DNA of 64,000 nucleotides from Selaginella moellendorffii (taxonomy: Eukaryota > Plantae > Lycopodiophyta), in NCBI RefSeq assembly GCF_000143415.4, contig NW_003314299.1, positions 482,229 through 546,228 of the forward strand. The letters run 5' to 3'. A program made the position numbers and the translations under genes. A model generated the notes under the pieces. That model was not told the origin of the DNA and did not search any database. It was given only the letters and a program-made list of their open reading frames with translations. Positions 8,840 to 61,227 of the stretch are shown here, piece after piece (within the stretch, counting starts at the first letter, position 1; each line of letters begins with the position of its first letter).

Positions 8840-10661
8840 CAGAATATAAGGAAAAATAAACTGCTGCCTGGATTATGTTGTCAAATTGCTCAAGAATTTA
8901 ACTAGAAGTACCAATTGCGTTTCATGCTTGATAAATTCAAATATTGACAAAATGGGAAAAAAACAAATCATTTGTCTATATAACACCCAACATTCCCAGG
9001 ATCTGAGCGTGGACCTCCTGGACCAAATCACCAGGGGCTCTGAGAGATCGCGAGCAACTTCAATCAGACAGATACCTTGCAACACCTAGCGATTGAGGTG
9101 TGTGGAAAGTGCAGCAGGCAAAAATTGTGTTTGATGATCCGCTGAGGTGTTTGATTCTATGCGAATGTTCTCAAAACTCTTCATCGAAAACTATCAAACG
9201 ACCAATGTTTAATGCCTGACGACGACCATGATAGGTACTAACAAAGCAAATATTCCTTTGGGTCACGATGCTCACACGAAGCTCTTCGGAGCGATGGAGA
9301 TGGAACGCGATGCCCTCGTCATGGCAGCGTGGGGCTGCCTTCTTTGCAATCGATACTCCAGCCGACTCGATCCAACGCCTTGGACTTTTCCAAATCGTGC
9401 GGTGCTTCGGTATCCAGCCTAGTCTCGTTGCACCAAACGACGATTAAGTCAATGCAAGTGCTACGTCCATATCACCCATGTTTTGTATACACTTCCTTAC
9501 AGATTGGGCTTCACAAGAATCTTAGACAAGCACGTTTGATTCCTCTGACAACGGCACGCAATGTAGCTCCGACCTCTCAAACTCCTTGAAGGATCGGTCA
9601 CCAGTGATGTAGAACACAAAGGCGGGAGGGGACGTGTCAAGGATATACATCACTGCTCCAAGAGGGAGGCAGAGCATGGAGACGTGTACCGCAGCGAGTG
9701 CTGCCACTAGCCAAGCGAAACGAAAGCCGTAGCCTGTAAAGCGTCCAGGCCTTCCTGAGTACTGGGAGCGCCATGGCGAAGACCGAGTCGGTGATACCTT
9801 CCCTGCCAAAGAAACAGAAGAACATTAGAGAGCTTTGATTGATCAAAACTGTCACACCTGTAATCGAATGTCTGGAGAGATGGATCTACAACCGCTGAAA
9901 CGCCTCCCGTGGAGCATCGAAACCAACTGAAGCCATTCTCCACGACACGGAAAGCATCGGCCTCTTTCGCCCGGGGACTGCTTGCTCCCCAAGTCGCGGT
10001 TGATATCAATCCTAAAAGCATTCACCAGAAACTTAGAGAACACCATCATAACTGCGCTCTACCTCTTTTTCCCGGCCTGGCGCATCAGGTCTGGGAACTC
10101 GAAATCGTAACAAATAGCTCCTCCAATCCGGCCGAGATCGGTCTTGATGACAGGAAGAATGGGATCCCCTGGAGTTCCATACCAATGGAACCAAGTGGGC
10201 TTTCCTGTAGCTAAATCCAATGGAGCCATCGGGAAGAACGAGGTCGAAATAGTTCCCGACTCTTCCAGTGCTCACGTCCTTGTACTCGTAAGTGATGCCA
10301 ACGTAGGTGCTGTGCTGGGAAGCGATCTGTCTGGCTTTGAATTGGAGAGAATCCCTCTCCTGTTTGAGGTCGAGTTTCACCGCAGCCTCGGACCAGAGGA
10401 CCAATCGATCGCCGGCTTGGAAGTGCTGGCTCGTCCTGTTGAGCATCACATCCATGTCCTCGTAGAAGAGGAACTTGCCCAGGACGCAAGAGACCAGCAC
10501 TGTTTTCTTCATCGTGAGGGCGATGTCCTTCTGGAAGAAATCACCTGAGAAAATGGAGACCCTGGCGCTGCTGTAGAACAAGATTGAGAAAGCAATGGCC
10601 CCAAACGCCAGGGAGTGGCCCACGATGCAGCTGTGTAGCACGCTTCTCATCGGATTTTTCC

Positions 10662-12280
10662 TTAACGGGCTGTGGCTCACCTGTTAACTTGATTCAACCG
10701 TTGGCAGCCGTCGGATTGGCCACAGCCCGTTAACTTGATTCAACTGTTGGCAGCCGTCGGATTGAGTCAGGTTCTCTGCGAGAATGTGGCTGACAATTGC
10801 CAGGTTCTCTAGAACCTAGCTGCCAGCTGCCAGGTTCTAGAGAACTAGGCTACCAGTTGCCAATTGTAGAGAACCCTCTCATCCTCCAATAACATTATTC
10901 CACGTGTCCGTTAACGGTCTCACCACAGCCCGTTAAGGCTGTTCTCGGGCACAGCCACGGTGACAGTATATTCAAATGAGGACATTGACTATTCCATTGT
11001 GTAGACCAGTTATTTTTACCAATCCTTCCATTGTGTAAACCAGCTATTCCATGTGAGGCACCAGAACTTAGTTGCCAGCTGCCAGGTTCTGGAGAACCAG
11101 GCTACCAGTTGCCAATTCTAGAGAACCCTCTCATCCTCCAATAACATTATTCCACATGTCCGTTAACGGTCTCGCCACAGCCCGTGTCCGTTAACGGTCT
11201 CGCCACAGCCCGTTAAGGCCGTTCCCGGGCACAGCCACGGTGACAGTATATTCAAATGAGGACATTGACTATTGACTACCATGTGAGGCAACTAATCATC
11301 CACTTGTACCGCAGTCCCACGGTGGATACCTTTGTTCGTGGATACTCCACACAGAAGGACGTACGCATGGATGCCCAATACGTACGATTCCATGTGAGGC
11401 AACTAGTCATCCACTCGTACCGCAGTCCCACGGTGGATACCTTCGTCCGTGGATACTCCACACAGAAGGACGTACGCATGGATGCCCAATACGTACGATT
11501 CCAGACATATGCATGGATGCCCAATACGTACGATTCCATGTGAGGCAATTAGTCATCCACTCGTACCGCAGTCCCACGGTGGATACCTTCGTCCGTGGAT
11601 ACTCCACACAGAAGGACGTACGCATGGATGCCCAATACATACGATTCCATGTAAGGCAACTAGTCATCCACTCGTACCGCAGTCCTACGGTGGATACCTT
11701 CGTCCGTAGATACTCCACACAGAAGGACGTACGCATGGATGCCCAATACGTATGATTCCAGACATATGCATGGATGCCCAATACGTACGATTCCATGTGA
11801 AGCAATTAGTCATCCACTCGTACCGCAGTCCCACGGTGGATACCTTCGTCCGTGGATACTCCATACAGAAGGACGTACGCATGGATGCCCAATACATACG
11901 ATTCCATGTAAGGCAACTAGTCATCCACTCGTACCGCAGTCCTACGGTGGATACCTTCGTCCGTGGATACTCCACACAGAAGGACATACGCATGGATGCC
12001 CAATATGTACGATTTCAAATTTAGGGGTAGGAATATACCTTGCTCAAGGGTATATTATACTTTTAAGTAACCACTAATCAATAGGAATCAAACCCGTGCC
12101 ATTTGCTCCGATACCAACTGTAGCGCACCTTATCTCTCTCCCCTTAAGCCAACTAGAAAAGGGGCAATTGCTTAATGAGAGAGCCCTTAGTGGCTATTTT
12201 ATCCCCATTTATCCCCCAAGGTTCCAAGGATCCACAGTGACAGTATATCCAAATCTCATCCCATGATTACATGCGCTACA
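10662..12280 (-). mobile_element. Non-autonomous short-LTR (TRIM-like) element, 3' LTR lost
   Basis: 162-bp LTR at 12119-12280 with perfect 9-bp terminal inverted repeats TGTAGCGCA/TGCGCTACA. PBS GCTCCGATACCA at 12105-12116. The interior is non-coding and repetitive. Confidence 0.75.
11279..12014. repeat. Six 111-bp tandem repeats with a 35-bp extra segment after units 2 and 4 (257-bp higher-order period)
   Basis: Units start at 11279, 11390, 11536, 11647, 11793 and 11904. The 35-bp segments are at 11501-11535 and 11758-11792. Confidence 0.95.
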
Positions 12281-14034
12281 ACGGCCCTGTCGTGGAGAAT
12301 CGCCGAGAACCACACCATGAGGAATGAGATCCCATCGATCCCCCACACGCCGGTGCTCATCACCAGCGGCAAGATTGTAACCTGGGAAACGGCGGGATGG
12401 AGGAAGGAGCCGACGCCGCCGAATCGATTCCATAACAACCACGCCGTGGTCAGATCGACGCGAATACCAGCGGCTGGGACGTTCTTGCTCGGTCAAAACG
12501 CTTCCTGTAGCCGATGCTTGCAACAAATGGGAGGAGAAGAAACATCCACAGTGCCAGTGCCCAAATTCTTCCCACAATTGGCACGCTGCTGGTGGTGGAG
12601 TTGTCCAGGCTCACCTTTCCCGGGAAGAATGCCAGGAACGCTAGGCTTGTGGCAGTGGTGTGGAGGATGAGCATCAGGAGAATTGTGAGCGCCCCAGAGC
12701 TCCATGAGCAAGAATTGTGCGAAATCCCTGATTTGTGGAAGAAATGCAGGAGGAAAAATGGTTGGAGCCAAGAACAAATTGCAACAGTTTGGAAACCAGA
12801 GAAGAAAGTGCACGCCACTGAGAGAATGGCCAACGGTGCCACCTTCTTCATGTCTCTTGGTGCTTGTTTAATTTATATTCTTATTATATTCATAAAAAAT
12901 TAAAATATTTATAAGGTGAAAGAAAAATACTATAAATATTTAGGGAATATACTTTAATTTATTGGTTTTAATTTTTTCACTCATAAAATTCGTTTGTAAT
13001 CAGTGCTTAATAGTATATCTTAAATATAGACTAAACGTCTAAAGTTAACTGAAATCCCTCAGAGGAAAAAAAAATTGTCCTACTTGACTTTCTTGTAATA
13101 CAAGACTCCTATCCCCTTCCCGATATTTACATCTTCTTTCCCACTTGTATTTTTTGGATTATAAAATATTAAAACCATGAAATAATTATATTTGTTTAAG
13201 CTGCTACCTAGAGGTCATTAATATTTGATATGGCCAAAGATAACTCACCATCATTTAAAAAAAAAATTTGATTTTTGGACTACAAATTTTTGAATTTTTG
13301 CTTTGTTCCCACCAAGTTGCAAAAGTTATTGAAAACAATCTAAAAAAATGTTATATTCAAACAGGGCTATTATTCTGATTTACATAAAAGTTTAATATAA
13401 AAAGAAAGAACCAATTATACTTTATTTTTCAATTAGTTAAAAATTTTGGGATATTTTGGATTAAATATTCTTAGGTTTGAATAATAATGCGTTAGATAAC
13501 TTCCCAGAAATTAAAATTATATTAGTTGGCTAGGGGAATCACACTATATGTTTAATAAACATCTAATAAAAGAGTGGGGTTCTCAAGGGAGTGCTACTTA
13601 AAAAAATGATCAAATATAAAAAGAAAAAGTTTATGAATAAGAATGCATATCTTTTTTCAATTAGTTAAAGATTTTGGGATATTATTGTGAAATATAGAAA
13701 GAAAGAGCATATGAATAAAACATTTCATTTTGCAACTGATTAAGGGTATTAGGATATTGAGTGTTAGGATAACCACTTTTAGCACTAACTTTGATATTTT
13801 AAAATATTCTACCATCTAATAATTAAATTCATTTTGTGTTTAAACACTTTTTTAGTATATTCTACTTTATTCTACTATTTAATTTGGATTGATCAATTAG
13901 GTTAATAAAAAATACTAAACAGTGTTACAAACAAATTATTCTTCTCATAATGAGTTTTTATTATTATCATTAAATATTATTTAATCTAGGCATGTTCTTA
14001 CAACAATCTTGAGTCCAATATTTTGGGTTGGATT

Positions 14035-15417
14035 ATGAACAGAAACTCTAACATTCATTTTATTCAATCCTGCAAAAGCCTTTATGAAGCAAGAGAGATT
14101 TACTTGAATCTTAAAAGGAATCATCCACTTTCTGATGATTCCTTCCTCAGCAACAAACTCATCCAGATGTTTGGCAAATATGGAAGCCCACAAGAGGCAC
14201 CCCAAATCTTTGATACCATCAAACACAAAGACTCCTTTTCGTGGGCTTTCACTCAAAACTCCCATCTTAAACATGCAAAAGAGATCTTCGACAAAATGCC
14301 GCAAAAGGATGTCTTTGCATGGACATCCATGCTCTTGGCATATGCCCGAAATGGGCATCTTGTCAATGCCCAAAAAACATTTGATGAGATGCCGCAACAC
14401 AGCCTTCTCTCATGGAGTGCAATCCTGTCAGTCCACGCACACAGCTGGGATCTAAAATATGCCGAAAGGATTATCTCCGGGATGCCCGAGTATGATCTCG
14501 TGTCTAGGAATTCCATTCTTGCGGCATACGCCCGGAACGGGCATGTAGAGGGAGCGAAACGTGTTTTCGATTCTATGGAGGCTCGTGACCTTGTGTCATG
14601 GACGACAATCTTGGTTGCCTTGTCGCAGGGCGGAGATTTGCACGGAGCAAAGCTTTTGTTTGATGCAATGCCGCAGCACGATCTCGTCGCCTGGACCACG
14701 ATGCTTGGCGCGTACGGACTGAACGAGGATGTCGATTCGGCACAAAGGATTTTCCGCGAGATGCCTGAGATAGATCTCGTTTCGTGCAAAACCGTGATGC
14801 GATGCTGCCGTGATGCTAGACAATCAAAGCTTATATTTGACTCCATGGCGCAGAGAGCTCTCTTGTCGTGGACAACAATGCTCGCTGTTCTTGCCAAGAA
14901 CAGCCCCGGGGAGGAAACCAAGAGCTTTTTCTATCAAATGCCGGAGCTTGATCTTACTTCCTGTACGATAATGTTGCTCTCACAACCCTCAGACTAGGAG
15001 CTTGTGAAGATTTTATCAAATGCCGCAGCTAGACCTGTGCTCTTGGAACTCTATTCTTTCGGCGTATGCTCAATCTGGGCATTGTGACTTTGCTTTAAGA
15101 CTCTTTAACGAGATGCCCGAAATGGATATGGTTTCGTGGAACACAATGTTAAATGCGTTTGTTCTAACTAGCAAACTACGTGAAGCTGCTTTACTCTTCA
15201 CGACGCCAAAGATCTAATCTTAAGCATGCCGTTCGTTCCCAGTGCTCTCGAGTGGACGTGCCTTCTCGGAGCATGCAAGAGCCACGAGGATTATAACAAT
15301 CTAATACTGGGAGACGATGTAGTGAGATCTGTAATGGACGTAGCCGACGCAACCCCCAAGACACCCTATGCTTTACTAGCAAATGTCTACACAAGCTCCC
15401 AAACAAAAAATCAATGA
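14035..15417 (+). pseudogene. PPR-A copy 2, premature stop and internal deletion
   Basis: Open to TAG at 14995-14997. About 380 bp is deleted near 15197, and the 3' end is fused to the peptide promoter. Confidence 0.88.
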
Positions 15418-15692
15418 TAGCGCGTGGACCTGGAGAAGTTTATGCAATCAGTGCCACGTCGTGACACTTCATCAGAGTGTTCAAGAAACGCAAGACATAA
15501 CACTACAAACTTGCAGTTGTCTATCCAATCTTTGAGGAATACGTGCATAAAATCTCGTCAAATTGTGCGTGAAGGAAGTTGCTTTGCTTGCTTCATATGG
15601 TCAGACCTTGTGGCCAATCAGATGTTCTCCTGCCTAGTATATAAGTGCAAGCCTCCTCGCATCGATCATACCTTTCTCTTGCGCAATCCAAG

Positions 15693-15872
15693 ATGTGTTT
15701 CGGTTTCTCTCAATCCTCTAGGCGAAAGCAGAGGCAAAGGCGCCCGTCTGCAGCAACAGGCGCCTTCGTGGGGGATGCCGGCAGTGGCGGAGCTTGTGCT
15801 GGCACTGGCGGCGGAGGCTGTGGTGGTGGTGGTGGTGGTGGCTGCGGAGGCGGCGGCGGCGGAGCCTGCTAA
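15693..15872 (+). CDS. Small Gly/Cys-rich peptide (MCFGF...), copy 2
   Basis: Intact ORF with only in-frame indels relative to copy 1. Confidence 0.7.
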   Translation: MCFGFSQSSRRKQRQRRPSAATGAFVGDAGSGGACAGTGGGGCGGGGGGGCGGGGGGAC

Positions 15873-16189
15873 ATACTCTGTATGAGAAATAGCCATGCAT
15901 ATGAATGTTTGTAAATATACATATTCCTGGGTTTTCCAATTGAACTTGTTTGTTTTTCTACAGCCAAGGATTGAGCTGGCCACGACCTTAGCACTGTTTC
16001 GGAACTAGTAAGTAGAATCTCGTAGAATCTATTCAGCAATTCTATGTACTTCAGGTACTATAGTGATTCAAGTAAAATCCAAAAAAAGGGAAACATCCAA
16101 CTTACAATACAACGTTTTGAGCGCTCTTCTCTTGTCTTCTCTCGAGTAAAAGCTTTGATTCTTCTAGCTCTCTCTCGCCTCCTGTTTTC

Positions 16190-17665
16190 TTACGATTCGC
16201 GTCGGGTTCTCCTTTGACGGGCGCCCTCGCCTTCCTTCTCAATCTCGTTGCCACCCGCGTCGTCCTCCGCCTTGTCCTTGGAATCGTCCGGGCTGGAGAT
16301 GTCTTCCTTCTTGGACTTCTCTACAGTCACCTACGCAAGACAAACAACCATGACAGTCCAAAACTCGCGCAGGGTATTGCTAATTGTACCTTCGTCTTCT
16401 TGGGGGGCGATTTCTTGCCACCAAAAAGAATCTTAAACAGCGTGACCACCAAGACGAGCGGGATCACAGCTATGGCGCTCAAAGAAATGGTTGGGAACTT
16501 CTCGGCCTTCTCCAGAAGATCCTGTCACAAACGAAAAGAAAGTTAGAATACGAGACAAAGTCCATGCTCATGTGTTTTACTTACAAGAATCTTTTCCTTC
16601 TGTGACGCCAAAGCCGGGATGTCGGCAACCTTGCGCAGGTACTCAAACATCTTTGCCTGAAAAGATTCAAGGTCGTCACACACACAAAGAAAAAAAAAAA
16701 CGACAAAAGAACACAAAGGAAAAGTACCTGGATGCCGTCAGGACTCGGAGTCGCTTCTTCAATTTTTTGCTTCTCCTTCTCAGCCTTGTACTTGGGCTTC
16801 CATTTCGTCTCCCTGTACTCTGCTGCCACAGCCTCTTCGGTCGCCACCAGGATGTTGTCAAAAAGAATGCCGTCCTGCATCGTCCAGATCTCGATCCCAA
16901 TCGCCGAGATCGGCTCTAGATCCGGCTTGTCCAACTCGAAGTACTCCGGGTTCGGTATTTGCTTCGGAGCCCAGATCCCCTTGTAAGCCGGGTTGTCGAT
17001 CATCGGAGGATACCACTTCCCCTTGTAGTCCGGGTTCCTCTTCATGGGCCTCTTCCATTCTCCACACCCAGACGCTTCCTCACACTTTGGGTTGCTGATC
17101 TTCGGGGGCTCCCACTCGCCATCCTCCTCGTCGTCCCAGTCCGCGGGCTTGCTAGCTTCCGGATCGTCAACCTCGTCCGGCGGGCTTGACCGCCTCCGCG
17201 TCCTCGATCTCCAGTGGAGCGTCCTCGTCCCAATCCTTGGGCTTGGTCGCTTCCGGATCGGGGATCTTCGCCCGCTCGTCCCAGTCCTGGGGCTTCTTGT
17301 CGTCGGGATCGGGGATGGTCTTGGGCGGGATCACGGCCGGCTCGAAGTCGCTCGCGAGGAGGTCGACGCTCTTCTCCTCCTTGCCGTCGACGAGGATCTT
17401 GAGCGTGTTCGGGTAGATCACTGCCGTGTAGACGTGAGAGAGCTTGTCAGCCACTGGCGATGGCGGGTACTTGAGGTGATGCTCGATGTGCTTGTCGGAT
17501 TTGGGGCCCTTGTGCTTGTAGATGAAGTGCACCTTGTTGGTGGTGCCACATTTGTCCAGCCCAAACATGATTGAGTAGGGGGATTCGTTGCTGAAATTGC
17601 CGGGCGTCCATTGTAGGAGAAGGAACTTGAGATAGGCGATGCCACATTCTAATCCCTTCTGGAAT
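16190..17665 (-). pseudogene. CNX: Calnexin homolog copy 2, 5'-truncated and frameshifted
   Basis: Frameshifting deletion in the P-domain at ~17181. Homology starts at FQKGLECGIAYLK. Confidence 0.88.
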
Positions 17666-18042
17666 TATAGAGATTGGGTTTAAACCTTAGTCAAACAGAC
17701 AATGAGTTAAATTATGTTTTAAGTCCCATTATCCTTATTATGCTCATCAAACTCAAAAGCTCAAGAGTGGTTATGTGGTGAAAAACTTTAAGAGAATATT
17801 AGATTTTGTATTTTTACACTAGATATTAAAGCTTAATTTAATTTTGATGGCTGACAAATATAGACGGAAAACCAAGGTTGGTAAACCTTAAGAGAAGTAC
17901 CATAGTGACCAGAGGATAGCTTAAATATGATTGTAGATATTTGACAAAATGATATGTTAAAGTTTAGTATTGTGGAGTTCACTATTGTATGTCTATGCAG
18001 GATCAAGAGATATGGACTTTGACATGACGATTTTTCGATAAA

Positions 18043-18684
18043 ATGCCATACCAACAGCTAGTTTCTTGGAACACCATGCTTGATGCTTATGCCCAAAACG
18101 GGTATATGGTAGAAGCAAGGGTCATGTTCAATGCAATGGTGGAGAAGGACGTAATTTCTTGGACTAGAATGCTTGCTGCCTATGGCCTTAGTGGCCAGAG
18201 TTCACTTGCAAGAAAAACTTTTGCCCAGATGCCAGGGAAGAATGAAGTTTCATGGGATGCAATGCTCACTGCATGTACCCAAGCAGGGGATTTTGTTTCT
18301 GTGTTTGAGTTGTTTCACACTATGCAGCTGGCCGGCATTTACAACCAAGTTGGATTTGTCTCCACTCTCAATGCTCACGGCCAAGTTGGGAGTGTTAAAT
18401 GTGCTAGAAGTTGCTTTGTTTCGATGGCTTTTGACTGTGGCATTCAGCCATGTCACCAGCATTACTCCTGCATAATCGATGGCTTGGCAAGAGCTGGTTA
18501 CATCGACAATGCAAGAGAACTCATTGGAAACATGCCATTTGTTCCCATTTCTTTGGATTGGCTGTGCCTTTTAGCTGCATGTCGGAGCCTCGAGTGTGGA
18601 ACCTGCGTATCAAAATGGGTGTCTGGAATTGCGAGCAGCAGAGCTATGTATCCTCTCCTGGCAAATGTATGGGCTTGGCATTGA
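18043..18684 (+). CDS. PPR-B copy 2 (213-aa open frame; may be a pseudogene)
   Basis: Highly similar to 8144-8839. An upstream in-frame TGA shortens it. Confidence 0.62.
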   Translation: MPYQQLVSWNTMLDAYAQNGYMVEARVMFNAMVEKDVISWTRMLAAYGLSGQSSLARKTFAQMPGKNEVSWDAMLTACTQAGDFVSVFELFHTMQLAGIYNQVGFVSTLNAHGQVGSVKCARSCFVSMAFDCGIQPCHQHYSCIIDGLARAGYIDNARELIGNMPFVPISLDWLCLLAACRSLECGTCVSKWVSGIASSRAMYPLLANVWAWH

Positions 18685-19357
18685 TAGAATCTAAGGAAAA
18701 AATAAACTGCTGCCTGGATTATGTTGTCAAATTGCTCGAGAATTTGAGACTAGAAGTACCAATTGCGTTTCATGCTTACAAAATGGGAAAAATACAAATC
18801 ATTTGTCTATATAACACCCATCATTCCCAGGATGTGAGCGTGGACCTCCTGGACCAAATCATCAGAGGCTCTGAGAGATCGTGAGCAACTTCAATCAGAC
18901 AGATACCTTGCAATACCTAGCGATTGAGGTGTGTGGAAAGTGCAGCAGGCGAAAATTGTGTTTGATGATCCGCCTGAGGGAATGTGTTTGATTCTATGCG
19001 AATGTTCTCAAAACTCGTCATGGAAAACTAGAAAACGATCAATGTTTAATGCCTGACGACGATACTTGCTGCCATGATAGGTACTAACAAAGCAAATATT
19101 TCTTTGCCCCACGATGCTCACACGTCGGAGCGATGGAGATACGCGATGCCCTCGTCATGGCAGCGTGGGGCTGCCTTCTTTGCAATCGATACTCCAGCTG
19201 ACTCGATCCAACGCCTTGGACTCCTCCAAATCATGTGGTGCTTCGGTATCCGGCCTAGTGTCGCTGTACCAAAGGACGATTAAGTCAATGCAAATGCTAC
19301 GTCCATTTCACCCATGTTTTGTATACACTTCCTTACAGATTGGGCTTCACAAGAATC

Positions 19358-21103
19358 TTAGACAAGCACGCTTGATTCCTCTGACAACAGCACGCAACGT
19401 AGCTCCGACCTCTCAAACTCCTTGAAGGATCGGTCACCAGTGATGTAGAACACAAAGGCGGGAGGGGACTTGTCAAGGATGTACATCACGGCTCCAAGAG
19501 GGAGGCAGAGCATGGAGACGTGTACCGCAGCGAGTGCTGCCACTAGCCAAGCGTAAAGAAAGCCATAGCTTGGGTAAAGTGTCCAGGCCTTCCCGGGTAC
19601 TGGGAGTGCCATGGCGAAGACCGAGTCAGAGATACCTTCCCTGCCAAAGAAACAGAAGAATATTAGAGAGCTTTGATTGATCAAAACTGTCACACCTGTA
19701 ATCGAATGTCTGGAGATATGGATCTACAACCGCTGAAACGCCTCCCGTGGAGCATCGAAACCAACTAAAGCCATTCTCCACAACACGGAAAGCATCGGCC
19801 TCTATCACCCGGGGACCAGTTGGTCCCCAAGTCGCGGCTGGTTGGAGCATGATATCAATCCTAGCACATTCACGAGAAATTTAGAGAACACCGTCATAAC
19901 TTCGCTCTACCTCTTTTTCCCGGCCTGCCGCATCAGGTCTGGAAACTCGAAATCATAACAAATAGCTCCTCCAATCCACCCGAGCTCGGTCTTGATGGCA
20001 GGAAGAATGGGATCCCCTGGAGTTCCATACCACTCCATGAATGGAACCAAGTGGGATTTCCTGTAGCTAAATCCAATGGAGCCATCGGGAAGAACGAGGT
20101 CGAAATAGTTCCCGACGCTCGCGTCCTTGTACTCGTAAGTGATGCCAACGTAGGCACCGTGCTGGGAAGCGATCTGTCCGGCTTTGAATTGGAGAGAATC
20201 CCTCTCCTGTTTGAGGTCGAGTTTCACCGCAGCCTCGGACCAGAGGACCAATCGATCGCCGGCTCGGAGGCGCTGGCTCGTCCTGTTGAGCATCACATCC
20301 ATGTCCTCGTAGAAGAGGAGCTTGCCCAGGACGCAAGAGACCGGCACTGTTTTCTTCATCGTGAGGGCGATGTCCTTCTGGAAGAAATCCCCCGAGAAAA
20401 TGGAGACCCTGGCGCTGCCGTAGAACAAGATCGAGAGAGCAATGGCTCCAAACGCCAGGGAGTGGCCGCGATGCAGCTGCGTAGCACGCTTCTTGTCGGA
20501 TTTCTCCATCTTGGAAAGATTCTCGTCGAGAACGGCCCTGTCGTGGAGAATCGCCGAGAACCACGCCATGAGGAATGCGATCCCATCGATCCCCCACACG
20601 CCGGCGCTCATCACCAGCGGCAAGATTGTAACCTGGGAAACGGCCGGATGGAGGAAGGAGCCGACGCCGCCGAATCGATTCCACAACAACCACGCCGTGG
20701 TCCAGATCGACGCGAATACCAGCGGCTGGGAGATTCTTGCTCGATCAAAACGCTTCCTGTAGCCGATGCTTGCAAGAAATGGGAGGAGAAGAAACATCCA
20801 CAGCAACAGTGCCCAGATTATTCCCACAATTGGCACCCTGCTGGCCTTGGAGTTGTCCGGGCTCACCTTTCCCGGGAAGAATGCCAAGAATGCCAGGCTC
20901 GCGGCGGTGGTCTGGAGGAGGAGCGCCAGGAGAATTGTGAGCGCTGCGGAGCGCCATGAGCAAGAATTGCGCGAAATCCCTGACTTGAGGAAGAAATGCA
21001 AGAGGAGAAATGGCTGGAGCCAAGAACAAATGGCAACGTTTTGGAATCCGGAGAAGATGGTGCATGCAGCCGAGAAAATGACCAACAGTGCCACCTTCGT
21101 CAT
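19358..21103 (-). CDS. Apolipoprotein N-acyltransferase (Lnt)-like membrane carbon-nitrogen hydrolase; join(19358..19640,19696..19860,19911..21103), 546 aa, intact
   Basis: Multi-TM N-terminus. Catalytic triad motifs LVLWSE (Glu), YRKSHLVPFME (Lys) and GAICYD (Cys), plus FRVVENG...RCSTGGVSAVVDP and TLY..YG followed by a TM. The two GT-AG introns (50 and 55 bp) splice in frame to 1641 nt. Confidence 0.85.
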
Positions 21104-22484
21104 GTCTCTTGGTGCTTGTTTGAATGTAGGTGGTAATTTATATTCTTATTATATTCATCAAAAATTAAATTATTTATAAGGTGAAAGGATTATATAATAA
21201 ATATTTAGGTATATTTTAGAATATACTTTAATCTAGCAGTTTTAATTTTTTCACTCATAAAATCCTTTTGTAATCAGTGTTTAATACTATATCTTAAATA
21301 TAGACCAAACCTCTGAAGTTAACTGAAAAAACTTAATTTACTTGTAATACAAGACTCCTATCCCTTTACCCATATTTACATCTTCTTTCCCACTTGTTTT
21401 TTTTGGATTATAAAAATTAAAACCATGAAATAATTATATTTGTTTAAGCTGCCACTTAGTCATTAATGTTTTGATATGGCCATGAGATAACTCACCATCA
21501 TTTAAAAAATTCTTTTGATTCTTGGATTGCAAATCTTTAATTTTTTGCTTTGTTCCCACCAAGTTGCAAAAGCTATTGGAAGTAATCCAAAAAAATATTA
21601 TGTTCAATTGTTCCTAGAACACACTAGTTGCATAAAGTTTTTAACTTATTTGTAAATTATGAGTAATCAAAGAGAATGACTTGCATAAAAGTTCAAATAT
21701 AACGAGAAAGAATCATTTTTCAATTAGTTAAGAAATTTAAAATATTTAGGGTTAAATATTGTAAATAATAATGGGTTAGATGACTTCCCGGAAATCTAAA
21801 TTCTATTGATTAACTACAGGAATTATACTATATATTTGATTAACATTTAACAAAAGAATCAGGCTCTCATATGAATGTTACTTAAGAGATGATCAAATAT
21901 AGAAGGAAATGCATAAAAATGTATATTTTTTTCAATTGGTTAAGGATGAAATATAGAAAGAAAGAGCATATGAATAAAATATTATATTCCAATTGATTAA
22001 GGGTATTGGGATATTGGGTCTTAGGATAACCACCTTTACCACTAACTTTGATATTTTAAGATATTCTACCATTTAATAATTAGATTGGTTTTCTATTTAA
22101 ACACTTTTTTAGTATATTCTAGTTTATTCTGCTTTTAAGTTGGATAATACTAAACATGTGAGGTCCAAGTGTATGGCTATGATGTTGTATACTAATATTA
22201 GCATAGTGGGATTTTGGTAGTCATCAGATTAGTTTCAATTTAGACCACTCGCTTTTATATATAAACTAAGGTTTTTGGGTTAATTGATATGCACATTTTT
22301 TGTATTCCCTTTTCATATTCCATGTATTTACATTGCCATATTCCATACCCTCATATTGGTGGGGGTGAGGGGCATTTTTTATTGTTTTGAGTGTTTGGAT
22401 TTAGGATTTTGGTTTAAATTTAAATTTTGCATCATCTAGATCTAGCTTTTCCATTTTCTTTCTTCTATTCTTTCCTTTTGTTTA

Positions 22485-22941
22485 GATCGTCAACCTCGTC
22501 CGGCGGGCTTGACCGCCTCCGCGTCCTCGATCTCCAGTGGAGCGTCCTCGTCCCAATCCTTGGGCTTGGTCGCTTCCGGATCGGGGATCTTCGCCCACTC
22601 GTCCCAGTCCTGGGGCTTCTTGTCGTCGGGATCGGGGATGGTCTTGGGCGGGATCACGGCTGGCTCGAAGTCACTCACGAGGAGGTTGACGCTCTTCTCC
22701 TCCTTGCCGTCGACGAGGATCTTGAGCGTGTTGTTCGGGTAGATCACTGTTGTGTAGACGTGAGAGAGCTTGTCAGCCACTGGCGATGGCAAGTACTTGA
22801 GGTGATGCTCGATGTGCTTGTAGATGAAGTGGATGTTGTTGGTGGTGCCGCATTTGTCTGGCCCAAACATGATTGAGTAGGGGGATTCGTTGCTGAAATT
22901 GCCGGGCGTCCATCCAGCCTCTTGCAGGAGAAGGAACTTGA
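22485..22941 (-). pseudogene. CNX: Calnexin fragment, copy 3
   Basis: FGPDKCG...[10 protein letters not shown]. It shares the copy-2 deletion, and its 3' half is replaced by unrelated sequence. Confidence 0.85.
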
Positions 22942-23415
22942 AAAGTTCAAAAGCTCGGGGGTAGTTAGGTGGTGAAGAACCTTAAGAGGAGATTAAATCT
23001 TTTATTTTCACACTAACATTAATATTGAAACCCAATTCAATTCTCATAGCTAACAATTGTAGAGAATTAAAGTTTGGCAAACCCTAAAAGAAGTAAAGAG
23101 ATAATCGTAGATGATCATTCCTTGGCAAAAGGAGGATTCTTAAGCACCAAATAGGATAGAAAAAATTTATAAACAAAACCCTCTTTTGGAAAGAATGCAC
23201 ATTTTAAGCTTTTACCTGAGTTAAAGTAATGACAAATAATCTTTGAAACAATAACAAAAACTTATTAAATATAAAATAACATTAAATTGCAATTTTGGAT
23301 GCAAGAATAACAAAATGTATATTTAACAAAATGCCATGTTAGAATTTAGTATTGTTGCTATATGTCTATGCAGGATCAAGAGATATGGACTTGACAATGA
23401 TGATTTTTCGATAAA

Positions 23416-24043
23416 ATGCCATACCAGCAGCTAGTTTCCTGGAACACCATGCTTGATGCTTATGCCCAAAACGGGTATATGGCAGAAGCAATGGTCATGT
23501 TCAATGCAATGGTGGAGAAGGACTATAATTCTTGCTGGCTATGGCCTTAGTGGCCAGATTTCACTTGCAAGAAAAACTTTTGCCCAGATGCCAGGGAAGA
23601 ATGAAGTTTCTTGGGATGCAATGCTCACTGCATGTACCCAAGCAGGGGATTTTGTTTCTGTGTTTGAGTTGTTTCACACTATGCAGATGGCCGGCATTTA
23701 CAACCAAGTTGGATTTGTCTCCGCTCTCAATGCTCACGGCCAAGTTGGCAGTGTTAAATGTGCTAGAAGTTGCTTTGTTTCGATGGCTTTTGATTGTGGT
23801 ATTCAGCCATGTCACCAGCATTACTCCTGCATAATCGATGGCTTGGCAAGAGCTGGTTACATCGACAATGCAAGAGAACTCATCGGAAACATGCCATTTG
23901 TTCCCACTTCTTTGGATTGGCTGTGCCTTTTAGCTGCATGTCGGAGCCTCGAGTGTGGAACCTGCGTATCAAAATGGGTGTCTGGAATTGCGAGCAGCAG
24001 AGCTATGTATCCTCCCTTGGCAAATGTATGGGCTTGGCATTGA
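23416..24043 (+). pseudogene. PPR-B copy 3, frameshifted
   Basis: A deletion near 23525 breaks the frame relative to the other copies. Confidence 0.82.
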
Positions 24044-24323
24044 TAGAATCTAAGGAAAAAAAAACTGCTGCCTGGATTATGCTGTCAAATTGCTCGAGAA
24101 TTTAAGACTAGAAGTACCAATTGCTCATGCGACTGGATTCTTGATGTTCCCATGAAGCATCGATGCTTCATGGGAAAAAAACAAATCATTTGTCTATATA
24201 ACACCCAACATTCCCAGGATCTGAGCGTGGACCTCCTGGACCAAATCACCAGGGTGAGAGATCGCGAGCAACTTCAATCAAACAGATACCTTGCAATACC
24301 TAGCGATTGAGGTATGTGGAAAG

Positions 24324-26893
24324 CATATTTGCATTTGAACGGGTATGATTAATAAAAAACGCCGTTTAAAACGTGCATATAATATGGCGTTTAAAATGGC
24401 GTTTAAACACCAAGAATATTTTTAAAAACCCTAAAGAATATGCTTTCTTTTACTTAGGATTTAGGGTTCACGTAAAATCAGGGTTTGCAGGATCCGGAAG
24501 CGTTGAGGTAAGTCTGGGATGGGGGGAGGAAGGCAGCCATGCTGGAGCTGGGCTCATGTTCTGTCGACATCCGAGACAAGCCACGGGGTGAGTCCATGGA
24601 AGTGTAAGTATTGCTCAAATACTTACACCGGCACGGCTGAACGAGTTTATGTTCACCTTGGGGGTATGAAAGGAAGGAATGTAGAGATTTGTATAGGACA
24701 GGTGCCACTGGAGGTGGTGAACAAGGCTCGGGCATCTTTTAATTGTGTGGAGCTCACAAAGAGCTCCATGATTGCAGCAAGTCCCCAAGAGAGACTTGCC
24801 TTAGCTCACGAGATTGAGGTCAGTGAGGTGAGCGGTGGTGCCAGCTGCGGGGCAAGTGGTGGGGCTACCGGAGGGCTGGGTGAGGTGAGCAGCGGCAGTG
24901 TTCCACTTTCTGGGAGCAGCAGTCTTAAACGAAGTGCTGCACCGGCGCTGGATGGTGACATTCAAAAGATGATGAAGTCTGCAAAGGTTCAATGTCTGGA
25001 TGATGCCGTGGCCGAGTTCTTCTATGTTGAAAATATCCCTTTCAACACCATTCGGAGGCCAAATCTGAGGAAGTTTCTTCAAGCTGCTATTGACTTCAGC
25101 CCTAGAGCTCTTGCACAGATGATGGGATATGAGAAGCTACGGAGTACACAACTGAAGAAGCTTTATGATAGTGTCAATGCTCGACTTGATCCAATCCATG
25201 AGGGGTGGAGAAGATATGGAGTTAGTATCGTCACCGATGGCTGGTCTAACAACCGTAGCCGATCCTTGATCAACTTCATGGCCTCCAACGTCCAGGGTTC
25301 GGTTTTCTTGAAGTCTATAAATTCCGAGGGCAGGACAAAGACGGGAGAGTGGATTTGGGTTGAGCTGAAGAAAGTGATTCAAGAAGTTGGCGAAAAAAAC
25401 ATTGTTCAGGTGATCACTGACAATGCATCAAACTGTGTGCAAATGGGAGAACTCATGACAGCTGAGTATCCTCACATTCTCCACAGCTAGTGTGTGTGCC
25501 ACGTCTTGGACCTTCTCTTTGAAGACATTGGGAGCTTGTCATGGGTAAAACCACTGGTGAAAGGCTGCAACGAGGTGGTAACTTTTATCACCAAAAAACC
25601 TCATGTTCTGGCTTTGTTTCGGAAGCTGAGCAATGGAGATCTCATCAAGCCGGCGAGCACAAGGCTCGCTTACATGTTTCTAGTGATGTCTCAGCTCCTA
25701 AATCTGACGACCTTGGAGGCATTGAAGGAGATGGTTGTGAGCTCCGAGTGGCGGCGATTGGACGTCACGAAGACCGCCAAAGCCCAGTGCATTCAAACTC
25801 AGATCTTAGAAGAGACTCCTAACTCTTTCTGGACTAGGTGCCAGCACTTGTTGGTGCTGCTTGGACTGCTCCTCAAGGTCTTGAAGCTTGCGGACCGGGA
25901 GGGGGCAACGTCCAGTCTTATTTTCGAGGCTATGGACTGGATGAATGAGAAGCTTTCAGAGGCTGTTGAGACTGGGATTTTAGCCGAGGAAGAGGTCAAG
26001 GAGATCAACAGGTTCATGATGGAGGATCATGGCAAGGGAGGTTGGAAAGCAGCTTGTTGGTTCCAGATGCATTCGATCTTGCATGGAGTTGCTTTTGTTC
26101 TGAACCCAACTTTTCTTCATCTCCCTCTCGACCAGGAGGCTTAGGAAGATTTTGTGGAGTACCTAGAGTTGTATTGCAAAGGAGATTGAGGACTTCAACA
26201 CAAGCTGCTGCACGAGTTTCAGAGTTTCCGTCAACAACTTGGCCATTTGTTTTCTTCGGAGGCAGCAAAGCAGGTGCGTATAAACTGTTTGTTTGTCAAC
26301 TTTTTAAACTGATTCTCTTGTATAGATGGAGAACTGGAAACACCCGGTGAGTTGGTGGAGCAACTTTGGTGTAGGCACACTAGAACTTCAAAGGCTTGCT
26401 TTATGGATCTTGAGTCAGCTAGTTTGTGCTTCACCATGCGAGCGAAACTGGAGCTCATGGAGCATGATCTAGACGAAGAGGAAGTCTCGACTGCTCTCCA
26501 AAAACTTGGAGAAGCTGGTTTTTGTGCACACAAATATGCATGTCATACAGAAGATCGAGTCCGGGAGTTTGAGGCTTATTGAGCATGATCTTGATAACCT
26601 TGAGCTTGAGCCTCAGTGGCAAAGGATCCTTGCACTTCAAGAGGTTGTTGAAGAACCTCTTCAACAACCTGATGATGACAGTGCTAGTGGTGATGATGTT
26701 CTAGATTCGGAGGATGAAGATTAGATTAAACCTATATTATATTATGTTAAACTTTGTTTAGTAACAATTAATTATTTTTTAATTATATTAAAACTGAAAA
26801 CCATTATACCCGTTCAAAAAAAAGCTAGACAGGTATTAAACATTCGATACCCGTTTGAATCCGGTTTTGTTCGAATGTTTGGATGCAAGTATG
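24324..26893 (+). mobile_element. hAT-superfamily DNA transposon (2570 bp)
   Basis: 8-bp TSD GTGGAAAG at 24316-24323 and 26894-26901. Imperfect 17-bp TIRs CATATTTGCATTTGAAC / GTTTGGATGCAAGTATG (13/17). The empty site is present in sibling units. Confidence 0.93.
24519..26724 (+). pseudogene. hAT transposase (BED finger, DUF659-type core, dimerization domain) with stops
   Basis: WKCKYC..H, SIVTDGWS, QVITDNASN, CHVLDLLFEDIG, WWSNFG...CERNWS. In-frame stops at ~25488, 26142 and ~26469. Likely intron ~26274-26325. Confidence 0.88.
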
Positions 26894-27299
26894 GTGGAAA
26901 GTGCAGTAGGCGAAAATTGTGTTTGATGATCTGCTGAGGTGTTTGATTCTATGCGAATGTTCTCAAAACTCTTCATCGAAAACTATCAAACGACCAATGT
27001 TTAATGCCTGACGACGACCATGATAGGTACTAAGAAAGCAAATATTCCTTTGCCCCACGATGCTCACACAAAGCTCTTCGGAGCGATGGAGATGGAACGA
27101 TGCCCTCGTCAAGGCAGCGTGGGGCTGCCTTCTTTGCAATTGACACTCCAGCCGACTCGATCCAACGCCTTGGACTCCTCCAAATCGTCTGGTGCTTGTA
27201 TCCGGCCTAGTCTCGTTGCGATTAAGTCAATGCAAGTGCTACGTCCATATCACCCATGTTTTGTATACACTTCCTTACAGATTGGGCTTCACCAGAACC

Positions 27300-28134
27300 T
27301 TAGACAAGCACGTTTGATTCCTCTGACAACAGCACGCAATGTAGCTCCGACCTCTCAAACTCCTTGAAGGATCGGTCACCAGTGATGTAGAACACAAAGG
27401 CGGGCGGGGACTTGTCAAGGATGTACGTCACTGCTCCAAGAGGGAGGCAGAGCATGGAGACGTGTACCGCAGCAAGTGCTGCCACTAGCCAAGCGAAAAG
27501 AAAGCCGTAGCTTGGGTAAAGCGTCCAGGCCTTCCCGAGTACTGGGAGTGCCATGGCGAAGACTGAGACGGAGATACCTTCCCTGTCAAGCAAAGGGAAA
27601 CTAAAGAATATCACAGCCGCATTGATCTAACACTGTCACACCTGTAATCGAATGTCTGCAGATATGGATCTACAACCGCTGAAACGCCTCCCGTGGAGCA
27701 TCGAAACCAGCTAAAGCCGTTCTCCACAACGTGGAAAGCATCGGCCTCTTTCACCCGGGGACCAGTTGGTCCCCAAGTCTCGGCTGGTTGGAGCACGATA
27801 TTAATCTTAGCACATCCACCAAGAACTTAAAGAACATCATCATAACTTCGCTCTACCTCTTTTTCCCGGCCTGGCGCATCATGTCTGGAAACTCGAAATC
27901 TTAACAAATAGCTCCTCCAATCCGGCCAAGCTCGGTCTTGATGGCAGGCAGAATGGGATCCCCTGGAGTTCCATACCACTCCACGAATGGAAGCTTTTCT
28001 GTAGCTAAATCCAATGGAGCCATCGGGAAGAACGAGGTCGAAATAGTTCCCGACTCTTCCAGTGCTCGCGTCCTTGTACTCGTAAGTGATGCCAATGTAG
28101 GCGCCGTGCTGGGAAGCGATCTGTCCGGCTTTGA
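27300..28134 (-). pseudogene. Lnt-like copy 3, 5' half deleted
   Basis: Exons 2-3 and the end of exon 1 remain, with a stop after GAIC. It joins the peptide promoter at ~28138. Confidence 0.87.
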
Positions 28135-28278
28135 TTTGAATCAGTGCCACGTCGTGACACTTCATCAGAGTGTTCAAGAAACGCAAGACGTAACACTACA
28201 AACTTGCAATTGTCTATCCAATCTTTGAGGAATACGTGCATAAAATCTCGATCATACCTTTATCTTGCGCAATCCAAG

Positions 28279-28461
28279 ATGTGTTTCGGTTTCTCTCAAT
28301 CCTCTAACAGGCGAAAGCAGAGGCGAAGGCGCCCGTCTGCAGCACCGGGCGCCTTCGTGAGTGGTGGCGGAGCTTGTGCTGGCACTGGCGGCGGAGGCTG
28401 TGGTGGCGGTGGCGGCGGTGGTGGTGGTGGTGGCTGCGGAGGCGGCGGTGGAGGCTGCTAA
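28279..28461 (+). CDS. Small Gly/Cys-rich peptide (MCFGF...), copy in unit 4
   Basis: Intact ORF, but the TATA-containing upstream segment is deleted. Confidence 0.6.
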   Translation: MCFGFSQSSNRRKQRRRRPSAAPGAFVSGGGACAGTGGGGCGGGGGGGGGGGCGGGGGGC

Positions 28462-28778
28462 ATACTCTGTATGAGAAATAGCCATGCATATGAATGTTTG
28501 TAAATATACATATTCCTGGGTTTTCCAATTGAACTTGTTTGTTTTTCTACAGCCAAGGATTGAGCTGGCCACGATCTTAGCACTGTTTTGGAACTAGTAA
28601 GTAGAATCTCGTAGAATCTATTCAGCAATTCTATGTACTTCAGGTACTATAGTGATTCAAGTAAAATCCAAAAAAAAGGGAAACATCCACTTACAATACA
28701 ACGTTTTGAGCTCTCTTCTCTTGTCTGCTCTCGAGTAAAAGCTTTGATTCTTCTAGCTCTCTCTCGCCTCCTGTTTTC

Positions 28779-30270
28779 TTACAATTCGCGTCGGGTTCTC
28801 CTTTGGCGGGCGCCCTCGCCTTCCTTCTCAATCTTGTTGCCAGCCGCATCGTCCTCTGCCTTGTCCTTGGAATCGTCCGGGCTGGAGATGTCTTCCTTCT
28901 TGGACTTCTCTACAGTCACCTGTTGCCAGCCGCATCGTCCTCTGCCTGATCCTTGGAATCGTCCGGGCTGGAGATGTCTTCCTTCTTGGACTTCTCTACA
29001 GTCACCTGCGCAAGACAAACAACCATGACAATCCAAAACTCGCGCAACGGTATTGGCTAATTGTACCTTCGTCTTCTTGGGGGGCGATTTCTTGCCACCA
29101 AAAAGAATCTTAAACAGCGTGACCGAAAAGAAAGTTAGAATACGAGACAAAGTCCATGTTCATGTGTTTTACTTACAAGAATCTTTTCCTTCTGTGACGC
29201 CAAAGCCGGGATGTCGGCAACCTTGCGCAGGTACTCAAACATCTTTGCCTGAAAAGATTCAAGGTCGTCACACACACACAAAAAAAAAAAGACGGACAAA
29301 AGAAAACAAAGGAAAAGTACCTGGATGCCGTCAGGACTAGGAGTCACTTCTTCAATTTTTTGCTTCTCCTTCTCAGCCTCGTACTTGGGCTTCCATTTCG
29401 TCTCCCTGTACTCTGCTGCCACAGCCTCGTCGGTCGCCACCAGGATGTTGTCAAAAAGAATGCCGTCCTGCATCGTCCAGATCTCGATCCCTATCGCCGA
29501 GATCGGCTCTAGATCCGGCCTGTCCAACTCGAAGTACTCCGGGTTCGGTATTTGCTTCGGAGCCCAGATCCCCTTGTAAGCCGGGTTGTCGATCATCGGA
29601 GGATACCACTTCCCCTTGTAGTCCGGGTTCCTCTTCATGGGCCTCTTCCATTCTCCACACCCAGACGCTTCCTCACACTTTGGGTTGCTGATCTTCGGGG
29701 GCTCCCACTCGCCATCCTCCTCGTCGTCCCAGTCCGCGGGCTTGCTAGCTTCCGGATCGTCAACCTCGTCCGGCTCGTTGTCCAGCCAGTCATCGGGCTT
29801 GACCGCCTCCGCGTCCTCGATCTCCAGTGGAGCGTCCTCGTCCCAATCCTTGGGCTTGGTCGCTTCCGGATCGGGGATCTTCGCCCGCTCGTCCCAGTCC
29901 TGGGGCTTCTTGTCGTCGGGATCGGGGATGGTCTTGGGCGGGATCACGGCCGGCTCGAAGTCGCTCGAGAGGAGGTCGACGCTCTTCTCCTCCTTGCCGT
30001 CGACGAGGATCTTGAGCGTGTTGTTCGGGTAGATCACTGCTGTGTAGACGTGAGAGAGCTTGTCAGCCACTGGCGATGGCAGGTACTTGAGGTGATGCTC
30101 GATGTGCTTGTCGGATTTGGGGCCCTTGTGCTTGTAGATGAAGTGCACCTTGTTGGTGGTGCCACATTTGTCCAGCCCAAACATGATTGAGCAGGGGGAT
30201 TCGTTGGGCGTCCATTGTAGGAGAAGGAACTTGAGATAGGCGATGCCACACTTTAATTCCTTCTGGAATT
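28779..30270 (-). pseudogene. CNX: Calnexin homolog copy 4, 5'-truncated, TM exon partly deleted, last exon duplicated
   Basis: The P-domain exon is open. There is a deletion at ~29125 and a direct duplication ~28835-29007. Confidence 0.87.
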
Positions 30271-30816
30271 ATAAAGATTGGGTTTAAACCTTAGTCAAAT
30301 AGACAATCACATAAGTGGGGAGTTAAATTATGTTTTAAGTTAGTCAACTATGCTTATCCTTATTATACTCATCAAAAGGTTATGTGGTGAAAAACTTTAA
30401 GACAATATTAGATTTTGTATTTTCACACTAGATTATAACATTGGTATTAAAGCTTAATTTAATTCTCATGGCTGACAAATATAGAAGGAAAACCAAGGTT
30501 GGTAAACCTTAAGAGAAGTACCATGGTGACCAGAGGATAGCTTAAATATGATTGTAGATAATCATTCCTGAAGGATTGTTAAGCATCAAATTAAGGTAAT
30601 AAAATAGAAAAAAGGCTTATAAACAAAACCCTCCTTTGTAAAAAAAATGCATGCTTTAGGATTTTACTTTAGTCCCAAAAATTAATCTTTAAAAAAATCA
30701 CAAAAAGTTATTAAATATAAAATGACACTAGATTGCAAATTTAGATGCAAGAATAACAAAGTGTATATTTGACAAAATGATATGTTAAAGTTTAGTATTG
30801 TGGAGTTCACTATTGT

Positions 30817-31513
30817 ATGTCTATGCAGGATCAAGAGATATGGACTTTGACACGACGATTTTTCGATAAAATGCCATACCAACAGCTAGTTTCTTGGAAT
30901 GCCATGCTTGATGCTTATGCCCAAAACGGGTATATGGTAGAAGCAAGGGTCATGTTCAATGCAATGGTGGAGAAGGACGTAATTTCTTGGACTAGAATGC
31001 TTGCTGCCTATGGCCTTAGTGGCCAGAGTTCACTTGCAAGAAAAACTTTTGCCCAGATGCCAGGAAGGAATAAAGTATCTTGGGATGCAATGCTCAGTGC
31101 ATGTACCCAGGCAGGGGATTCGGTTTCTGTGTTTAAGTTGTTTCACACTGTGCAGATGGCCGGCATTTACAACCAAGTTGGATTTGTCTCCGCTCTCAAT
31201 GCTCACGGCCAAGTTGGCAGTGTTAAATGTGCTAGAAGTTGCTTTGTTTCGATGGCTTTTGATTGTGGCATTCAGCCATGTCACCAGCATTACTCCTGCA
31301 TGATCGATGGCTTGGCAAGAGCTGGTTACATTGACAATGCAAGAGAACTCATCGGAAACATGCCATTTGTTCCCACTTCTTTGGATTGGCTGTGCCTTTT
31401 AGCTGCATGTTGGAGCCTCTGAGTGTGGAACCTGCGTATCTAAATGGGTGTCTGGACTTGCGAGCAGCAGAGCTATGTATCCTCTCCTGGCAAATGTATG
31501 GGCTTGGCATTGA
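30817..31513 (+). pseudogene. PPR-B copy 4 with premature stop at 31420-31422
   Basis: A 1-bp insertion creates TGA before the E-region end. Confidence 0.8.
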
Positions 31514-61032: not shown

Positions 61033-61227
61033 AATGGGATCCCTTAGATTTCCATACCACTCCATAAATGGAACCAAGTGGGCTTTCCTGTAGCTAGCCA
61101 TCAGGAAGAACGAGGTCAAAATAGTTCCCGACTCTTCTAGTGCTTGCGTCCTTGTACTTGTAAGTGACGCCAACATAAGCGCCATGCTAGGAAGCGATCT
61201 ATCCGGCTTTGAATTGGAGAGAATCCC
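61033..61227 (-). pseudogene. Lnt-like copy 5 continuation (remnant)
   Basis: Resumes exactly after the TSD. Confidence 0.85.

Follow-up and report, generated by a model that had tools for sequence, protein, structure and literature searches.

Positions 19358-21103 of the window, by which we mean the whole 64,000-nucleotide (nt) stretch of Selaginella moellendorffii DNA that was analyzed, hold a real three-exon Selaginella gene of 546 codons on the minus strand, which is both transcribed and spliced. Its product is a full-length homolog of apolipoprotein N-acyltransferase (Lnt), with the fold and the catalytic center of that enzyme, and lies outside the functional equivalog of the canonical lnt genes. 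Lnt is generally regarded as an enzyme of the bacterial envelope and as a target for antibiotics. The gene is the only intact Lnt-like copy in the window, where it forms part of a tandem array, and the genes that flank it are plant genes of the PPR and calreticulin families.

The initial annotation had proposed a spliced frame of 546 amino acids (aa) that appears as three separate pieces in a list of open reading frames (ORFs), namely 19907-21103 (398 aa), 19626-19850, and 19358-19693, all on the minus strand; its coordinates, strand, introns, and length agree with the sequence and the ORF list. Exon 1 (19911..21103) opens with the ATG at 21103 and contains 397 codons and the first 2 nt of an Arg codon split by intron 1, encoding an N-terminal bundle of seven membrane helices and then the greater part of the nitrilase-like domain, to just beyond the catalytic Cys. 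Exon 2 (19696..19860; 1 nt, 54 codons, and 2 nt) encodes the rear half of the nitrilase-like domain (IDIMLQPAATWG...ENGFSWFRCSTGGVSAVV) and matches positions 366-394 of the TIGR00546 model. Exon 3 (19358..19640; 1 nt, 93 codons, and the TAA stop at 19358-19360) supplies the end of the domain and the WTLYPSYG motif, followed by the last membrane helix with a short tail behind it, giving a tally of 397 whole + 1 split + 54 + 1 split + 93 = 546 codons ahead of the TAA. Intron 1 (19861..19910, 50 nt) and intron 2 (19641..19695, 55 nt) are GT..AG introns in phase 2, each of which splits an Arg codon after its second base. With a slash marking the splice site, exon 1 ends in ...AAA AAG AG/GTAGAG and exon 2 starts after ...GTGCTAG/G ATT GAT ATC ATG, whereas at intron 2 exon 2 ends in ...GAT TAC AG/GTGTGA and exon 3 starts after ...TTTGGCAG/G GAA GGT ATC, the acceptor itself reading TGGCAG/G GAA.

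Transcript evidence was taken from assembled contigs (not reads) of public S. moellendorffii runs, many of which match the window without a mismatch. Contigs of three studies (X1, X5, and X12) skip exactly 55 nt at 19640/41-19694/95, corresponding to intron 2, and one contig (X5) skips 50 nt at 19860/61-19909/10, corresponding to intron 1. Contigs of X1 and X12 that end at 19910 have 12-nt loose ends (CATGATATCAAT) equal to the start of exon 2. Both joints are CT..AC on the plus strand and GT..AG on the gene strand, and both introns are thus removed in transcript contigs at the positions first predicted. The gene is also under purifying selection and selectively maintained: relative to its paralog in the S. 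moellendorffii assembly GCA_000143415.2 (L014), in which both introns are conserved, the synonymous divergence (dS) is 0.087, the nonsynonymous divergence (dN) 0.029, and dN/dS 0.33. Contamination as a source of the gene is ruled out by the 50-55 nt GT..AG introns, the flanking plant genes, and the tandem array on the same contig.

The best database match is the uncharacterized S. moellendorffii protein LOC112351564 (P0001, 549 aa; 94% identity over exon 1), followed by two further paralogs. Exon 1 alone passes the Pfam threshold for CN_hydrolase (PF00795; 30.9 bits, 2e-7, cut-off 23.2), for which P0001 scores 52.6 bits, and among the NCBIfam models it matches best TIGR00546 (lnt; 3e-14, 53 bits), which covers the membrane and hydrolase parts together. 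A profile was needed to reach Lnt among solved structures, as a single-sequence phmmer search of the PDB found soluble nitrilases only and no Lnt. A profile of 135 relatives aligned end to end with the Lnt of Escherichia coli and of P. aeruginosa (E = 4e-32; profile positions 15-486 against Lnt 13-513), and soluble nitrilases matched it at 1e-18 or weaker, over the domain alone and 14 orders of magnitude behind the Lnt chains.

Structure comparison gives the same picture. The AlphaFold model of P0001, built on the alignment of relatives, has a mean local confidence (pLDDT) of 93.1 and a predicted template modeling score (pTM) of 0.92; in it, seven helices precede residue 236, residues 245-470 make up an alpha/beta domain, and a long helix follows at 478-501. 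Over its whole length, this model can be superposed on solved structures of Lnt: the top 24 matches of a Foldseek search against the PDB are all Lnt chains, with template modeling (TM) scores of 0.62-0.73 over ∼540 columns, and soluble nitrilases follow at TM 0.35 only. A fold search of the ESM Atlas gave TM 0.79 to a bacterial Lnt cluster. In the window exons themselves, hydrophobic segments fill residues 1-236 (20396..21103), the membrane domain delimited by hydropathy and loop charges, and a further one at residues 477-509 (19472..19570) coincides with the last helix of the model.

The window exon translations were aligned to E. coli Lnt (b0657; L011:4344-5882, minus strand) and to relatives in order to place the catalytic residues. 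Glu290 (codon 20234..20236, in WSE) is the equivalent of the general base E267 and is invariant in a 30-sequence alignment (A2), Lys349 (20057..20059, in SYRKSH) is the equivalent of K335, and Cys382 (19958..19960, in ICYD) is the equivalent of C387, the acyl-carrying nucleophile; all three show little or no variation among 30-135 relatives. Glu357 (20033..20035, in VPFME) corresponds to E343, the Lnt-specific fourth catalytic residue (PMC5500890), in the hidden Markov model (HMM) alignment on which this equivalence rests, MAFFT placing a gap just before E357. N314, Y333, and R432 have counterparts in N332, Y347, and R423, and Y388 and E389, which affect the second reaction step (PMC5500890), in Y383 and D384. 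The WTLYPSYG motif aligns with LTPYARTG of E. coli just ahead of the last helix. The NDAWF loop is three residues shorter than in E. coli, the family reading QPS-WTW and the window protein QPA-ATW. The initial annotation had claimed the full Lnt architecture (membrane bundle, Glu-Lys-Cys triad, TLY..YG motif, and last membrane helix) and had noted WSE and ICYD in place of WPE and ICYE; hydropathy, alignment, and the paralog model confirm the former, and the latter was read correctly. Nor does the protein group with the plant nitrilase family, given the ranking of Lnt ahead of nitrilases in both profile and fold searches.

Setting the protein beside known systems makes its position clearer. It shares with proteobacterial Lnt (reference E. 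coli b0657; PDB 5N6H, 5XHQ, 5VRG, 6NWR, and 8B0K-P) an arrangement of eight membrane helices in which the nitrilase-like domain is inserted between helices 7 and 8, the equivalents of E267, K335, C387, E343, N314, Y333, and R432, and loop charges that fit the same topology. Unlike those enzymes, to which it is only 15-17% identical in structural alignments, it is encoded by a eukaryotic, intron-bearing gene and has WSE for WPE and C-Y-D for C-Y-E. Closer in some respects are noncanonical bacterial Lnt-like proteins (P0139, P0120, and the loci L006 and L007 of Bacteroidota metagenome-assembled genomes [MAGs]), which likewise have a short lid loop and an ENGF..R motif, also fall below the lnt equivalog cut-off (92-121 bits), and, of the bacterial proteins in the trees, lie nearest to the eukaryotic family. 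Unlike the Selaginella gene, theirs are intronless, reach the LNT_N threshold, carry W[GP]E or LPE, and form a separate clade (98/85). P0139 (L013:6001-7512) must be truly bacterial because it sits divergently beside an mraZ-rsmH-ftsI-murE-mraY cell-division cluster. These nearest bacterial relatives, which combine LNT_N and CN_hydrolase, may also differ in function from canonical Lnt.

With other eukaryotic CN-hydrolase membrane proteins, the Selaginella protein aligns over its full length and shares one clade and the motifs WSE, K.H.VP..E, ICFD, QPSWTW, and ENGF.L.RCS. The Selaginella gene stands apart in the loss of two upstream introns that a Sphagnum-type contig has, in the change of the first Trp of WTW to Glu or Ala, and in its tandem amplification. 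The soluble plant nitrilases (NIT1-4, N-carbamoylputrescine amidase [NLP1/CPA], beta-ureidopropionase, and Nit2) have the same alpha-beta-beta-alpha fold and Glu-Lys-Cys triad but lack a membrane domain, and they match residues ∼280-430 only, far more weakly than Lnt does.

An exhaustive profile search returned 7,147 cluster representatives at E<=1e-3, 434 of them at E<=1e-30. Among the best of these, streptophyte members are the nearest and come from Sphagnum (four species; for example, CAK9202127), the liverwort Calypogeia fissa, Closterium (three strains), Spirogloea, and Klebsormidium nitens; chlorophyte members rank next, from Pedinophyceae sp., Chromochloris zofingiensis, and Pleodorina starrii (GLC43321). 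The fungi Basidiobolus (KAK9729531) and Mortierella (KAF9134723), the amoeba Balamuthia (KAL6050154), and Paulinella follow, and MMETSP protists are represented as well; a language-model search also listed a Basidiomycota cluster. A genome-contig search, the source of the labeled bacterial rows in our trees, found only eight bacterial loci, and the MAG contigs that carry some of them are very short. A second search, started from the alignment A2, yielded seven proteins only and contributed nothing further. When relatives of unusual length were scanned against Pfam for informative fusions, none emerged: the single fusion was a bacterial one with VTT/DedA, and two relatives of ∼1,200 residues have no recognized extra domain.

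Two trees were inferred, E. coli Lnt serving as the outgroup of each: a quick one from 117 rows and a careful one with IQ-TREE from 46 rows, both from a sample biased to the best 150 matches of the plant profile. In the careful tree, exon 1 of the window gene groups with two Selaginella paralogs (100/100) within a streptophyte-only clade (starred in that tree; 98/96) of Selaginella, Sphagnum, Calypogeia, Klebsormidium, Spirogloea, and Closterium. This clade adjoins one that holds the chlorophytes (84/68), and all eukaryotes fall together (95/92), apart from the bacterial rows. The quick tree likewise puts the gene among streptophytes in a clade of eukaryotes only. The gene structure tells a similar story. 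A Sphagnum-type ortholog on a metagenome contig (L001:6082-9518) has four introns, the last two of which (...AAG CTG GG/gt...ag/A GTT GAT ATT ATG and ...GAG TAC AG/gt...ag/G GAA GCT) match both Selaginella introns in codon and in phase (phase 2). Selaginella keeps these two only, at 50-55 nt versus ∼230-250 nt in the Sphagnum-type ortholog. Because the introns are shared and the tree follows the species tree, the family appears, on this comparative evidence, to have been inherited vertically at least since the streptophyte common ancestor. It is neither a recent bacterial import nor an import specific to plants.

The distribution of charged residues provides an indication of how the protein sits in the membrane. 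Lys and Arg are concentrated between helices 4 and 5 (YRKRFDRAR) and between helices 6 and 7 (six Lys/Arg) and are absent from loops 1-2 and 5-6 (all in exon 1), a pattern that agrees with the cytoplasmic and periplasmic loops of Lnt. From the positive-inside rule and homology to Lnt, we predict a luminal or extracellular orientation of the nitrilase-like domain. No N-terminal extension suggestive of a transit peptide was seen, the protein opening directly with a membrane helix. By analogy with Lnt, the seven membrane helices would thus be followed by a nitrilase-like domain on the noncytosolic side and then by the eighth helix, and Cys382, activated by Glu290 and Lys349 with Glu357, would attack an acyl ester of a membrane glycerophospholipid. 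Following the ping-pong chemistry of Lnt, a thioester acyl-enzyme would form on Cys382 with release of the lysolipid. The acyl chain would then be handed to an acceptor embedded in the membrane, on its luminal or extracellular leaflet; the nucleophile of this acceptor would most likely be a free amine.

The acceptor above all, and the handling of the donor as well, would be expected to differ from those of Lnt because the lid is largely missing and no Lgt/Lsp pathway is known in the host. A bacterial-type diacylglyceryl-cysteine lipoprotein is an unlikely acceptor. The diacylglyceryl-Cys moiety alone satisfies the acceptor requirement of Lnt (PMC10313180), so that an amine-bearing two-chain lipid is a reasonable guess in its place. 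Candidate reactions would include phospholipid-to-amine transacylation, yielding N-acyl-phosphatidylethanolamine or another N-acylated membrane lipid, and the acylation of a membrane-anchored secretory protein at its N terminus, taking place in the lumen or on the cell surface. We raise only as a tentative possibility, and one that may well prove wrong, that the eukaryotic Lnt-like family performs a lipid-dependent N-acylation as yet assigned to no enzyme in these organisms.

Taken together, we consider it likely, if well short of certain, that the locus is a functional nuclear gene encoding a 546-residue Lnt-fold membrane enzyme of a vertically inherited eukaryotic Lnt-like family, which would transfer acyl groups by way of a thioester. 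A number of observations weigh against this reading. Beside the spliced forms, unspliced contigs of X1 and X6 span the introns (19833-19939 and 19524-19737), which could represent intron retention, pre-mRNA, or library DNA, and the RNA status of the runs is itself only a guess. The full-length analyses and the structure relied on P0001, the 94% identical paralog, the window exons being analyzed separately. Exon 1 fails the Pfam LNT_N model (16.5 bits, cut-off 27.1), and P0001, at 80.1 bits, fails the TIGR00546 equivalog test (cut-off 132.9), which E. coli Lnt passes at 411. In Lnt, arm 3 (the lid loop, E. coli ∼344-364, including the essential R352 and the phosphatidylethanolamine-contacting P361) closes over the donor lipid (PMC5500890; PMC10313180). 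About 19 of these residues, R352 and P361 among them, are missing from the window protein, and because most of the arm is gone, the donor may be handled differently than in Lnt; the short lid is common to the whole eukaryotic family and the nearest bacterial relatives. The first Trp of QPSWTW, present in nearly all other relatives in a loop equivalent to the E. coli W415-F416 region near the active-site cavity, is Ala or Glu in the Selaginella copies (QPAATWG or QPAETWG, in exon 2). Many rows of the trees are metagenome or Logan proteins without names. No seed-plant member was found among the closest matches, even though the libraries hold many seed-plant proteomes (seed-plant genomes were not searched). 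Finally, we found no literature on eukaryotic Lnt-like proteins, bacterial work only, and no biochemistry for any member. The protein is, at any rate, not a canonical Lnt, because it scores below the NCBI lnt cut-off and lacks the ∼19 lid-loop residues. The same score, together with WSE and C[FY]D being the consensus of the eukaryotic family, bears out the earlier suggestion of a divergent subfamily.

The origin of the gene can be read in more than one way. The initial annotation offered both patchy retention and horizontal acquisition by plants. The former fits a distribution across the green lineage, fungi, an amoebozoan, and Paulinella, and the latter is not supported by the comparison with other eukaryotes. 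That a bacterial or fungal lnt-type gene moved into Selaginella or early land plants and gained its introns later is a tempting idea, as Lnt is known as a bacterial enzyme, bacterial clusters come first in the language-model search, and the best matches include no seed-plant relative. Nevertheless, Selaginella falls into one clade with peat moss, a liverwort, and streptophyte algae, beside the chlorophytes and inside the eukaryotes, both introns correspond in position and phase to those of the Sphagnum-type ortholog, and the nearest bacterial proteins are only 24-31% identical, so we give this scenario almost no credence. A deeper transfer deserves more attention, namely that the whole eukaryotic family stems from one or a few ancient bacterial transfers, at or before its root, followed by spread between eukaryotes, instead of from the last eukaryotic common ancestor. 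This would account for the patchy occurrence in the green lineage, some fungi, Balamuthia, Paulinella, and MMETSP protists, and for the features shared with the closest bacteria (a short lid loop and motifs of the ENGF..RC and QPS.TW types), and the careful tree does not resolve the relations among eukaryotic supergroups. The monophyly of the eukaryotes is, however, equally predicted by ancient vertical descent with losses, and the sampling favors the best plant-profile matches. We regard such a transfer as doubtful yet worth keeping in view; even under it, the Selaginella gene would remain vertical within green plants.

Function is likewise open to alternative readings, chief among them that the enzyme is a hydrolase, such as a membrane phospholipase A1 or lipid amidase whose acyl acceptor is water, and not an N-acyltransferase. 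Members of the nitrilase superfamily are mostly hydrolases, no bacterial-type acceptor is known in plants, and the arm 3 lid, which in Lnt buries the donor lipid and shields the thioester, is largely missing. Against these points stand the conservation of the whole membrane domain and of the Lnt-specific Glu (the E343 equivalent), the occurrence of the same short loop in the nearest bacterial relatives, which have LNT_N, and the conservative retention of the second-step residues Y388 and E389 as Tyr/Phe and Asp, leaving a hydrolase unlikely in our view. It is very improbable that the gene is a decaying member of the array, transcribed without a role. Unspliced contigs do exist and the other six copies or fragments in the window are truncated, frameshifted, or interrupted, but here the 546-codon frame is intact over three exons, all catalytic residues are kept, dN/dS is 0.33, and correct splicing is seen in several studies.

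If an acyltransferase is indeed encoded here, the implications reach beyond Selaginella. An Lnt-fold enzyme with an intact catalytic center has been conserved in streptophyte algae, bryophytes, and a lycophyte and occurs in fungi and amoebae as well, which would point to an acyl-transfer reaction at the noncytosolic face of eukaryotic membranes. The eukaryotic Lnt-like family is a concrete candidate for orphan N-acylation activities. Its distribution suggests a loss in seed plants and thus a case of gene loss on the way to that group. Were lipid-dependent N-acylation its role, it would constitute a new eukaryotic route of lipid modification, lost in seed plants and, as far as our searches show, absent from animals. 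The locus also illustrates how a tempting inference of horizontal transfer can be corrected by shared introns and a tree that resembles the species tree.

The gene lies in a tandem segmental duplication spanning 5900-43200, the units of which (∼5900-13900, 16000-24500, 26900-34900, and 37700-43200) repeat at ∼10.6 kb and are 86-97% identical. Each unit contains, in the same order, calreticulin-family fragments (e.g., 16581-17045, 17167-17568, and 22490-22870), pieces of PPR genes (14023-14997, 18043-18684, and 23453-24043), and one Lnt-like copy. Between two units, ORFs on the plus strand at 24519-26144 encode a DUF659 domain (2.6e-35), which is typical of hAT-type transposase-derived proteins. 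A low-complexity, G+C-rich stretch at 15645-15872 reads as a Gly/Cys run in one frame (GGGGCGGGGGGGC...) and as an Ala/Thr/Ser run on the other strand, and we saw no evidence of its being a gene. A Gly/Cys-rich peptide coamplified with the Lnt-like gene was accordingly rejected, the coamplified sequences being the calreticulin and PPR fragments.

Two of the remaining Lnt-like copies are longer than the rest. The nearly full copy at 32192-33780 is 96.6% identical to P0001 over residues 1-263 and lacks 155 nt matching 20161-20315 of the window; because this loss removes the catalytic-Glu region and shifts the frame, the copy is probably a pseudogene. The copy at 9525-12851 is probably also a pseudogene, judging from ∼1.6 kb of foreign sequence that splits it between 10660 and 12277 and a frame change near residue 134. 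Truncated fragments with 3' or internal parts only are found at 27303-28141, 42515-43158, 1736-1954, and 61033-61225. The last two are of equal extent and have similar flanks (1944-3024 and 61241-62319), suggesting a further, older duplication.

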